Positions 4,152 through 9,833 of a stretch of DNA of 64,000 bases are shown piece by piece. Under the pieces are notes generated by a model. It was not told the DNA's origin. It saw only the letters and a program-made list of their open reading frames with translations, and did not search any database. Source of the stretch: Syncephalis fuscata S228 (taxonomy: Eukaryota > Fungi > Zoopagomycota); the NCBI GenBank assembly GCA_025786725.1, contig JAHLTZ010000010.1, forward strand, positions 1 through 64,000. The letters run 5' to 3'. Numbering within the stretch: position 1 is the stretch's first letter; the number at the start of each line of letters is the position of its first letter. The position numbers were made by a program, and so were the translations under genes.

Positions 4152-6174
4152 CTAATGTATGGCCATAGCAGGTGCTTTTTGTCGTTTGTCGTCGTCACTT
4201 TGCTGCTGTGGCAGAACTTTGACAAACGCAAATGCAATAGCCGCAATTCCGGCAACTGGAATAAGTACGTAGTATTGCATACGTAAAGCATCAGCATGTG
4301 CTTGTATAGTAAGGCTTTTGATGGGTTCTGTAAGATCACGAATTTTTTCAACGGACTGTATAGCATCTTTAGTCAAATCGCCTGACGAAATGTACGTTTC
4401 AAGCAACGATGCCAATTTGTTGTTGAAAATGGCGCCCTCGATTGCAAGGCCGACCACTCCACCAATAATCTGAAAAAATGCCATAAGCGCTGTGGCAATG
4501 GCTATGTTTTCTGGTGTCACCGATGCCTGAGCCGCCAGTATAGGTGTCTGGATAGCACCACCAAATCCTAAGCCGAGAACAAACATGGAACCAATCTCTA
4601 GTGCTCTCGTTGAGTTTACATCAAAAAGAGTAATTAATCCAAAGCCAACCATGGCTATCGCCATGCCAATTGGCATAAATAGTCTATAAGATCGCTCTCC
4701 AACACGTGCAGAAATAATGCCAGATACTACTACTATAATGGAAACAGGCAATACAAACGGAAGTAAGACTAGGCCTGACTGTGTAGCACTGTAACCATGA
4801 ATTACCTAGTAAAGTTAATATAATATTAGTATGCTGTTTTAAATGGTGCTTACAGCAATTTATCCATTGTATTTGCTCAGTAATCACTTACTTGGAAGAA
4901 TATTGGAAGATAATAAATCGGACTAATGAACCCCCAGCCAACTAGAAAAATGCCAACACCAAGCAAACAAATAGATTTTGAGCGGAAAAGCTGTAATGGT
5001 ACTATTGGCTCAGTCGCCATACGAAACTCAGCCCATAGCAAACCTGCCAGAATAATAATGGCTACACAAAATAGCGAGATAACGACCGGTGAGGCCCATG
5101 GATACATGGAGCCACCCCAGTTGATAGGCAATAGCAATGCAACGCAAAATAAAAGGACAAGCAGTGTACCTAAGTAATCAACGCGTTTCATTTTCTCGCG
5201 TACTGATCCAACGGGTGTTTTGAGTTTTAGCAAAAAGCCTACAATGGGAACGACAATACCACCAACTGGCAAATTGATGTAAAAAGCCCAACGCCACGAG
5301 AGATGATCAGTAAACAGTCCTCCCAATAGTGGTCCAATGACGCTACTGAAAGTAAATACAGCACCAACGATGCCGGCATATTGTCCACGCTGATGGGGTG
5401 GAGCAATGTCTAATTGCAGTGATATACTTTATTGTTAGTGAACAAAAAACATACGGGCTATTCAGCAGCTTACCAGCAATAATGATCATTACTAGCGGAA
5501 TAAAACCGCCGCCTCCAATGCCGGCAACGCCCCGCATAATAATCAGCATGATGATGCTATTAGCTGCACCACACCCTAATGAGCCAGCTAGAAATATAGT
5601 GGTAGCAATAAGAAACATAATCTTGCGACCAAAAATATCAGAAAATCGGCCATAAAGTGGCTGTGCTGCTGTCGACGTTAGCAAATAGGCAATACTAATC
5701 CACGCAACCTGATCTAGCGCATCAAAATCCGAGGCAATTTGTGGAATAGCTGTGGATACGATTGTTTGATCAAGTGAAGCAAGAAACACTGTTAAAGCCA
5801 GCCTATAATGTTACATTAGTTAACTAAACAATACTTTAAATTGTGCCTACTTACCCTATGAATACAATTATACGACGACGCAACGACAATTCCTCCATTG
5901 TATTTGTGTCTTTTTGAAAGCATTGGTTGTTGTCATTGGTGCCACTACTATATAGACTAAAATTAGAAGTATTCTGTACTTCTCTTGCTTCGTCAAAACT
6001 ATTGGCATCGCTTGTTTTTGCTTCGTTGGCTGTGCATTTTTTGTCAGGTGTCATCGTACAGGTGTCTTTGTTAAAATGCTGTTCAGTGGCTTTCATTATT
6101 GTAATTGGTTCGCTTTCAGCATCCAGAGAGTGAATTATTTTGCCATTCGCTTCCATCATAGATTGATTAACCAT
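4152..6174 (-). CDS. MFS drug:H+ antiporter, DHA2 (14-TMS) family, 4 exons
   Basis: LASLDQTIVSTAIP (motif D1), YGRFSDIFGRK (motif A), WRWAFYINLPVG and many hydrophobic helices. Introns near 5803-5853, 5410-5473 and 4806-4890. Confidence 0.92.
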
Positions 6175-7921
6175 TTTGATGCTTTAAATCTAATTTGGTT
6201 GACTTTTGCTAAGACCAAAAAATTAGCTAGATAAATGGCTTGGCAACAAATTAAAAATGAATTTTCAAAACAACGACAAGCGTGTAACACGCTTAATGCA
6301 ATTGTAAAATACAACAACAGCTTTTAACGATTATTCACTATAGAATATATAGAGAAATGAAATATTGCAGGTTAATCAGTACTTTTATTATTTACAACAA
6401 ATGTATTTTTATAGCGTTTGATTACTATCAAATAGATGGTGAAAAAACAGCTAGCATGGATACAATGTTAGTCAGATCTAATAATTATTAGTCACAGAAA
6501 GCCGGAAATGTGTAACATTAGTAGTAGATTTGGTGTTGGCAATTGAATGTACGTAGAAAAGAAAATGAGCAATACATAAATGGTTTGTTTAGAATAACTG
6601 CAAGTTTTCTGTTTCAACAGTTTAAAATAGGCCTTGTGCTATATTATGCTAGGATTTGAGTAAATCGCAATAAATGTTATTATTGTAAAAATCAATACTT
6701 TATTAAACAATAAGCAATCAGGTGTATGTCTACTGTTGACGCATGCTACTCGCGTATTCCGAATGTGACAATATTGTATATCTTTTAAGGCCCAGTGACC
6801 GGTCGAGCTTTTAATCCAACGCAGCAATGCTATCTATCAAGATGTACATTGCATGGGTGTTTTTCATTCTTAACGTATACTCCTAATACGGCATTTTACC
6901 GAACGGTGTAATAAAAAGATGCATTTGCACACTGCTCCTCTTACTCCAATCCACGCATGTAAAAAAATGACACATTAAATGTCATGTGTTTAATTGTTCC
7001 CCTTTTTATTTCATGATACGACTATAACAACTTTTTAGCTAACAATGCATGCTATTAAAAATGGCGTTGCTACAGTCATTAACACTGTTACCAAATTCAC
7101 ATTTTAGTAGTTTTCTAATCAATTTGTAAAAATAATTTAGATAATTAACCGATTCGTGTACACATGTACCAGTCGACATTCACCCGCGAAGGTATAATGA
7201 TATATACTTGTTAATACAGTATTATTGATATGTTGACTAAATAATAATAAAGGTTAATTTGCTTTTATTACATATTTTATTGACAATTTTCAGAATTATT
7301 TCAATTACAATACACTGCATTAATATACTGATAGCAGTTATATTCAAACTAAACTCATGTCCTACATTTATTTATTGTTGTTTTTACTTGGATAATTGTA
7401 TATCAAATTACTATTTTGCTTAATCGCTTCATTGCAACGTCATCAGAAAAGTGTAGCAGCCTATTTATATTGAAAATAAATAAGTAAATTATATGGAAGA
7501 CGGTGCTCAGTTAAGTATTAGTGGCAACTAAGTACCTATTCATGTGATTTAGTTAATAAAGATCAGTTTATTTATACGTTAATTTATTTGTTAGTATAAT
7601 AATAATGTTATTGATGCCAGTGCTTTAGTTGGTGCCAAGTATTGAAATTGTTACTATCGACAATACATATCTTTGTAATTATAAACTTTAAACGATAACT
7701 CCATAACCCATACAATGGTCGTTGCAACGTCATTCAATAAATCTAGTTTAATCAATACCAGCGTATGTTTATTTACCACGTAACAAAACTACCATGCTAT
7801 GACACTTCAATATTGAAAAATTCACCACACAGTACTCCAAATTGCTCCAGTATCAAAAAACTGCATCCACCAGCCGTCTAGTTTGCAAAATAAACAAAAT
7901 AAATCCAGCGCGCTGGCTGGC

Positions 7922-7926
7922 AAAAA
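7922..7926 (-). terminator. Pol III terminator (T5) downstream of tRNA-Ile
   Basis: The minus strand reads ...GAGCA ACC TTTTT G, so the T5 starts 3 nt after the discriminator base. Confidence 0.8.
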
Positions 7927-7929
7927 GGT

Positions 7930-8004
7930 TGCTCACTACAGGGATCGAACCTGTGACCTTGGCGTTATTAGCACCACGCTCTAAACCAACTGAGCTAAGC
8001 GAGC
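7930..8004 (-). tRNA. tRNA-Ile (anticodon AAT), intronless
   Basis: Cloverleaf: acceptor GCTCGCT/AGTGAGC, D stem GCTC/GAGC, anticodon stem TGGTG/CGCCA with loop CT-AAT-AA, T stem ACAGG/CCTGT with TTCGATC loop, discriminator A. Confidence 0.97.
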
Positions 8005-8010
8005 TGATAG

Positions 8011-8129
8011 AAACTACATTACTTCTCATTCCCGCGTGGTCCCCCACCGCAGTACTACAGAAGCGCGGCCTAACTTAACTTCGGAGATCGGACGGGATCC
8101 GGTGCTTTCTAGGCGCAATGAACGTAGTT
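8011..8129 (-). rRNA. 5S rRNA (119 nt), dispersed copy
   Basis: The minus strand reads AACTACGTTCAT...GAAAGCACCGGATCCCGTCCGATCTCCGAAGTTAAG...TAGTACTGCGGTGGGGGACCACGCGGGAA...AATGTAGTTT. Helix I (AACTACGTT/AATGTAGTT) pairs, and box A, intermediate element and box C-like segments are present. Confidence 0.96.
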
Positions 8130-8939
8130 GAAGTGGAAGCAGTTTTTTGCAGCTCGTTCGTAATTTCTTTTACGTAAAAGCCTACCATTATCATGGCATT
8201 TGGCTACACATACGTCATAGGATTGCATCGTATACAAAAGCAAATGCATACACGCAATAATAGCAACAATTATAAACATAGTGCTATCGATAAGCATATA
8301 TATAATAATGATGACAGTATATGCATGTAATCTATTAGTATAGTTATTCTATCATCAGCATAATACAATAAACAAACCATATCAATGAATAACAACAAGA
8401 GCATTTATGAGTAGTACGGTGCAATGTATTGCAGTTATAAAATACGATTACTATTCAATAGTAAAAGTATATATACACATATATTGTGCATATATGCGTA
8501 CTGCTATTCAATAGCTATAGCAGATGACAAGGTAATACAGTGCATTAAACGATAAGCATAAGCAACAATAAGAATGCATATAGAGTAGATGACTAGCATA
8601 CATACAGGCTGTGTACTATAGTCAATAGCAACAAAGCAAACACGATAATACGAAAGAAAGATAATAGACTTAGACGTGACGTGCATATAGTATGCCTACT
8701 TACCATCATAATTACCTGTGAAAGTGATGAACAAAGAATACAGATGGCAAGTACAGTAAGGAATAGAAAGAAAGAGCGCGATAGGTGACGTGATGGAAAG
8801 GAATAAGTGTGATGCATATAGGCTGTGCTAAATGGTGTGTGACTATTGTAAAATAATAAAACGAATAAGTAATAGGAAAAGTATGAATGGTAATGCCGAA
8901 GCTATAGTGCATATAGTCTGATGAGCGACATAGGTTAAA

Positions 8940-9405
8940 TGAGTCGAGTGTTATTAGTAGTCGAACTAGCGTTAGACAAATAGCAGTTCTGAATAGCGTG
9001 TAGCCATTGTAGAACAAAGCGATATATAAAAGAATGAATATAGAGTGAAAGGAGTCTGAATAGCGATGTTAAAGTTATAGTGCATACAATGCAATGAAGA
9101 GAATGACTGAAGTATACTGATACATGTAAGTAACAGAATGTGTCTAATATAGCATAGATGGTATATATAGTGTAAAATGAAGTAGAAACGATATATGTGG
9201 ATAGAATTATATACATACTGGATAATAAATCTACAATGCTAAGTATTTGATGACTAATGTCACTCACCACTCATTCTCATGTTCAATTAATCCAAATATT
9301 ATTAAATTTAGCCATTTAACCATTAAATCACATTAAATGGTTAATAGTTAATAGTTGTTTATAAAACAAATTGTACAGTAAGGTTAAATGATACACAATA
9401 TTTCA
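8940..9405. repeat. Dispersed repeat family A, copy 1
   Basis: 8950-9320 aligns by eye, inverted, with ~39530-39900. 9240-9400 matches 32530-32670 and 40450-40530 (GATGTCACTCA..CATGTTCAAT..; AGTAAGGTTAAATGATACACAAT shared with the 32.6 kb copy). Confidence 0.8.
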
Positions 9406-9833
9406 TATGATTAACAATATGTTAATTCTTGTATTGCCTCTTTAAACAACCGATTATGATTATAATATATTTTCCATCTCGTTGTCCTCTGTACTTTCCC
9501 TTGTAAACACTTATGTGAATACTGTATGGCCATCACTTCCGCTATCTGAATATATGTATAAACAATTAATGGCGCTGGTGCCAATCATGCAACATAGAGT
9601 TTATAAACTGTTAGCGCTATATTCTAAAACTCAAAATCAAGTAAAGGCTGTATGGGGCTTGGTTTAGCGGAGTACTGGCCACAATAAGCCAATTGACGTT
9701 TGAAAACACATTCTAAACCTCCTTAACAAGAAGCAAGTGCCTTAAAAGGGGATGGTTTTAAAACTTGGTCGATTTGTTCTTTGTTCCCGCATCTCTCACT
9801 GCAATTCAATCTTTATCTTTTCTACTTTAAACA

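Follow-up and report, generated by a model that had tools for sequence, protein, structure and literature searches.

How are 5S rRNA and a tRNA produced when the 5S gene carries no terminator of its own and runs within a few bases into a tRNA gene? This question was raised by a locus in a 64,000-nucleotide stretch (the window) of Syncephalis fuscata S228 (Fungi; Zoopagomycota; GCA_025786725.1, contig JAHLTZ010000010.1, positions 1 to 64,000, forward strand). A sequence-only reading of window 7922-8129 had proposed that 5S and tRNA-Ile form a dicistronic Pol III unit with one shared terminator, from which RNase P would release the 5S, and had named competing internal promoters as an alternative. 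Our analysis confirmed the observation and its interpretation was supported by the genomic evidence, although in the absence of RNA evidence the single transcript remains an inference. Eukaryotic Pol III genes are textbook single units and dicistronic cases are rare.

Anatomy of the unit

Covariance model searches placed a full-length 5S rRNA gene (RF00001, 106.2 bits against a threshold of 38, model positions 1-120) at 8011-8129 on the minus strand and a tRNA gene (RF00005, 63.6 bits) at 7930-8004 on the same strand. ARAGORN called the tRNA as Ile with anticodon AAT, and it has canonical A and B boxes. The 119-nt 5S gene ends with GTAGTTT, followed by the 6-nt spacer CTATCA (8005-8010, minus strand), which would be the 3' trailer of the 5S and the 5' leader of the tRNA, then by the tRNA, and then by the tRNA trailer ACC and T5 (7922-7929, minus strand; T5 at 7926-7922) followed by GCC. 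The longest T-run anywhere in 5S, spacer and tRNA is 3, and the T5 is the first and only Pol III terminator of the unit. No other known RNA was found in window 7300-9800 at E up to 1.

Genome-wide distribution

The 29.4-Mb assembly (371 contigs) contained 22 5S genes, both by covariance model and by blastn, in which all 22 candidates were scored. In all 22, a same-strand tRNA begins 5-7 nt after the 5S, a layout far beyond chance. The partners were Gly-GCC (7), Asp-GUC (5), Ile-AAU (4), Glu-CUC (3) and Lys-CUU (3). The units are 194-200 nt long, their longest internal T-run is 2 or 3 (in seven of them the 5S ends in only T2), and the first T4-T6 starts 0-4 nt after the tRNA and is followed by G(C). 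The scenario which would have refuted the sequence-only reading, a single silent copy while the other 5S genes carry terminators, is therefore excluded. However, copy numbers in this draft assembly should be read with care. Six pairs of contigs (C336/C339, C2/C58, C100/C235, C80/C317, C120/C223 and C350/C142) carry near-identical regions around 5S units that align over their whole 3.1 kb and are probably duplicated or allelic, and on C336 and C339 a neighbouring tRNA-Gln sits at the same distance. The assembly therefore holds haplotigs or recent segmental duplications, and about 16 loci are independent.

The dependence appears to be reciprocal. In blastn searches with each partner tRNA, every copy found of Ile-AAU (4), Gly-GCC (7), Asp-GUC (5) and Glu-CUC (3) was 5S-linked, whereas Lys-CUU had three linked copies and one identical stand-alone copy. 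These units are therefore the only detected source of 5S RNA and of four essential tRNA species, though a blastn search with a 72-75-nt query could miss a very divergent isodecoder. It could be argued that the units are pseudogenes or an assembly chimera and that the real 5S genes lie elsewhere, since the assembly is a draft and the rDNA contigs (C187 and C202), which carry no 5S, may have incomplete intergenic spacers. However, this is very unlikely: the 5S scores 106 bits and is conserved while its flanks have diverged to about 70% identity, the units hold all detected copies of essential tRNAs such as Asp-GUC, and some 16 loci with distinct flanks cannot be one chimera.

Terminator and promoter signals

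To learn which signals are used by Pol III in this organism, we examined 12 distinct stand-alone tRNA genes. Eleven of the 12 have a T4-T6 run followed by GC within 15 nt of their 3' end, and five use only T4, indicating that T4 is a working terminator here; the T5 of the unit at 7926-7922, followed by GC, has the same form. These results bear on the possibility that 5S and tRNA are two fully independent genes that merely abut, in which case the 5S would terminate at a non-canonical signal near its T2-T3 end and the tRNA would use only its own promoter. Non-canonical Pol III termination is documented in human cells (PMC3141230), most of the 5S copies end in T3, and T3 in most units could cause some early termination. 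However, seven of the 22 units have only T2 at this position, canonical signals are evidently used by the stand-alone genes, and a 22 of 22 association with a fixed 5-7-nt spacing has no explanation under independence. We consider this reading improbable.

The upstream 50 nt of the stand-alone tRNA genes were A+T-rich (mean 76%, range 64-88%) with TATA-like runs. The linked tRNA instead has the 3' half of the 5S in front of it, at 50% A+T. This also bears on a second alternative, in which the dicistronic transcript exists but the tRNA is transcribed on its own as well: TFIIIC bound to the A and B boxes would place TFIIIB over the 3' half of the 5S gene, and type 1 and type 2 promoters would compete or alternate. 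In its favour, the linked tRNAs keep canonical A and B boxes (62-68 bits), and an identical tRNA-Lys-CUU works as a stand-alone gene with its own flank. However, the TFIIIB site would lie in the 50% A+T sequence of the 5S, TFIIIB assembly over a GC-rich upstream gene is disfavoured, and in dimeric tRNA genes only the upstream promoter is used in vivo (PMC2566860). Dual use is thus possible but unlikely.

The 5S genes have an upstream, promoter-like module of their own. An alignment of 17 units showed about 75 nt of conserved sequence (8130-8205, minus strand, in the window) with CCAAAT at about -75, TTTTACGTAAA at about -52, GAAATTACGAA at about -35 and GCAAAAAACTGC at about -18. It is shared by units with different tRNAs and different distal flanks. 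A bipartite pattern from this module occurred 14 times in the genome, 12 of them upstream of a 5S, and one orphan copy (TTACGT..AAATTACGAA..AAAACTGC; contig C57, 390345-390366; L096:1501-1560) has no 5S and no other Rfam RNA downstream; it may be a relic or the promoter of an unknown RNA. A role of the module as a general Pol III element was not supported, because it is absent upstream of the stand-alone tRNAs, and the single U6 snRNA gene (contig C112, 803029-803150) has a TATA-like box near -30, only a distant TTTACGTA element near -105, and a T7 terminator. An inverted copy of the promoter-proximal motif (CAAAAAACTGCATCCAC; 7854-7870, plus strand) lies about 60 nt beyond the terminator and is 94% complementary to 8133-8149. 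Two 5S-tRNA-Gly units (L007, contig C4:7698, and L010, contig C113:60391) keep only traces of the module, yet have an intact 5S, and may be an older or differently promoted subclass.

Internal promoter and a TFIIIA-like gene

In the Rfam alignment the conserved 5S regions around positions 49-63, 72-78 and 80-101 are intact; by analogy with Xenopus and yeast 5S genes these would hold the internal control region (A box, intermediate element and C box). A Pfam zinc-finger scan of the genome led to a TFIIIA-like gene on contig C317 (about 562300-563650, plus strand; L080:1303-2650), with nine tandem C2H2 fingers, the eighth split by an intron, plus a tenth separated finger (the gene, with about five short introns, spans 562300-563870; L080:1303-2869). 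All Cys and His ligands are present. A tenth finger is also noted for the Yarrowia protein (PMC2566860). When exons were searched separately against solved structures, without the joined protein, one piece had Xenopus TFIIIA fingers 4-5 as its top hit (3.3e-19, seven orders better than the next hit), another had yeast TFIIIA as its top hit (2.1e-14), and a third aligned collinearly to fingers 2-3, whereas two control multi-finger genes hit generic zinc-finger proteins first. TFIIIA thus appears to be retained, which fits a 5S-first unit that cannot borrow a tRNA promoter for its start site.

Proposed transcription and processing

Taken together, these units are best read as obligate 5S-first dicistronic Pol III units, a reading to which we assign a probability of about 0.8. 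In the inferred mechanism, Pol III starts at 5S +1, directed by the internal control region together with the upstream module, meets no T4+ run in the 5S or the spacer, reads through the tRNA and stops at the T4-T6 run 0-4 nt after it. RNase P cleavage at the tRNA 5' end would then release the 5S with a 5-7-nt trailer, which a Rex1-type 3' exonuclease would trim, while the tRNA would be finished by normal 3' processing and CCA addition. The 208-nt RNA was predicted to fold into a separate 5S three-way junction and a tRNA cloverleaf with the spacer unpaired, which would make it a normal RNase P substrate with a long leader. Furthermore, 3'-extended 5S is tolerated, and Rex1 trims such ends in yeast (PMC2566860). 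If so, 5S 3'-end formation would depend on a tRNA-processing enzyme, four essential tRNA species would depend on the 5S promoter, and ribosome and tRNA supply would be coupled transcriptionally. Transcripts could not be shown: a search of sequencing runs gave six RNA runs, each with only about 6% of the sampled words (environmental samples), while the one run of this organism guessed to be RNA behaved as DNA (unique flank depth 18.6, 5S 259) and consisted of assembled contigs, in which no starts, ends or junction reads could be seen.

Comparison with other systems

The order found here is the reverse of that in Yarrowia, in which dispersed 5S genes are fused to tRNA genes with 4-7 nt between them, no terminator in between and a single T-run after the second gene (2008, PMC2566860). 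In Yarrowia the tRNA comes first, its promoter drives the unit and makes TFIIIA dispensable, and only 48 of 108 5S genes are fused. In our genome 22 of 22 are fused, the 5S is upstream in every unit, no tRNA lies upstream of any 5S within 1.5 kb, and it is the tRNAs that depend on the 5S units. Strikingly, the Yarrowia partners are Gly-GCC, Asp-GUC, Glu-CUC and a Lys-CUU-Glu-CUC pair, the same families as here. In Trichomonascus vanleenenianus, a budding yeast distant from this genome, all 5S genes are in tandem with tRNA genes with spacers of 1-3 bp and a TFIIIA gene is still present; the authors presented this as the Yarrowia-type fusion and argued from it that TFIIIA may be dispensable, without stating a 5S-first order (PMC13130702, 2026). 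Dimeric tRNA genes and tRNA-snoRNA dicistrons likewise give two Pol III products from one transcript driven by the upstream gene's promoter and separated by tRNA processing enzymes, but there the upstream gene is a tRNA with a type 2 promoter (cited in PMC2566860). In bacterial rrn operons distal tRNA genes follow the 5S and RNase P helps to release the upstream RNA (PMC5179076). However, those are 16S-23S-5S operons of a bacterial RNA polymerase, whereas here the 5S copies are dispersed singly in a genome with U6 snRNA, 5.8S rRNA and intron-containing genes.

Full-text searches found no natural eukaryotic 5S-first case. However, the order is workable in fungi: synthetic 5S rRNA-tRNA promoters drive guide-RNA expression in Rhodotorula toruloides, Issatchenkia orientalis and Humicola insolens, showing that a Pol III transcript started at a 5S gene can read through a tRNA and be processed, though these are engineered constructs with a guide RNA as cargo. 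A metagenome scan for a 5S C-box followed by a tRNA B-box gave 12 contigs and no close relatives. Three of them come from unknown eukaryotes with dense tRNA arrays, and the GC-rich remainder are chance hits. In L090 (PVBE010777074.1, 1894-2110) the 5S is followed after 11 nt by tRNA-Asn without an intervening T-run, so the layout may exist elsewhere, while in L092 and L089 the 5S has its own T5 or T7. Environmental contigs of this kind (L090; also L089, L092, L086 and L091) are packed with Pol III genes: L089, L090 and L092 hold 105 tRNA genes in 12.8 kb, plus 5S, and L092 also carries U6 and tRNA-Sec. A run of a second organism (organism B) contains a 5S about 91% identical on a contig that ends at the 5S borders, which is compatible with variable flanks there too but proves nothing about tRNAs.

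The upstream homology block

Unexpectedly, the 5S is also the 3' end of a non-coding homology block of about 0.7-1.3 kb. A profile of positions -1300 to -1 matched full-length in 20 of 22 units; the Gly units L007 and L010 lack the long block. The window's copy was 93-98% identical over 1.0-1.2 kb to two units that carry Asp and Lys tRNAs instead of Ile, and the similarity stopped exactly at the 5S 3' end, where the different tRNAs begin. Genome blastn divided the block into two parts. The proximal part of about 630-700 nt (8206-8830, minus strand, in the window) occurs only next to 5S genes, at 68-76% identity between distinct loci. The distal part (9020-9330) is a dispersed repeat of about 300 bp with 64 matches from 40 scored candidates (791 candidates in all), often found as inverted pairs 300-600 nt apart; it resembles a foldback or MITE-type transposon, and a copy lies at the distal end of most 5S units. 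Protein-coding content of the block was rejected, because its two longest ORFs had no Pfam match, its ORFs were short and not frame-consistent, and there was no period-3 signal.

By contrast with its flank, which has diverged by a quarter or more, the 5S is identical or nearly so in all copies: 12 of the 22 are identical over the full 119 nt and 7 more differ only at the last base. This argues for selection or concerted evolution acting on the 5S. The spacers (CTATCR/CTATAA in all four Ile units) and the last 5S base are specific to the tRNA type, and the junction therefore lies at the 5S end. It is tempting, though doubtful on present evidence, to propose that a module of about 0.8-1.3 kb (non-coding block, promoter and 5S) has been joined repeatedly to the transcription start sites of different highly used tRNA genes, by 5S-anchored recombination or by targeted insertion. 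In such an obligate system the tRNA would supply the terminator, RNase P would make the 5S 3' end, the nascent 5S would never carry the oligo-U tail that La normally binds, and output of 5S and of five major tRNAs would be coupled, convergent with Yarrowia in partner choice but opposite in logic. On the other side of the unit, a multi-exon major-facilitator (MFS) transporter gene (4152-6174, minus strand) lies about 1.8 kb beyond the tRNA terminator.
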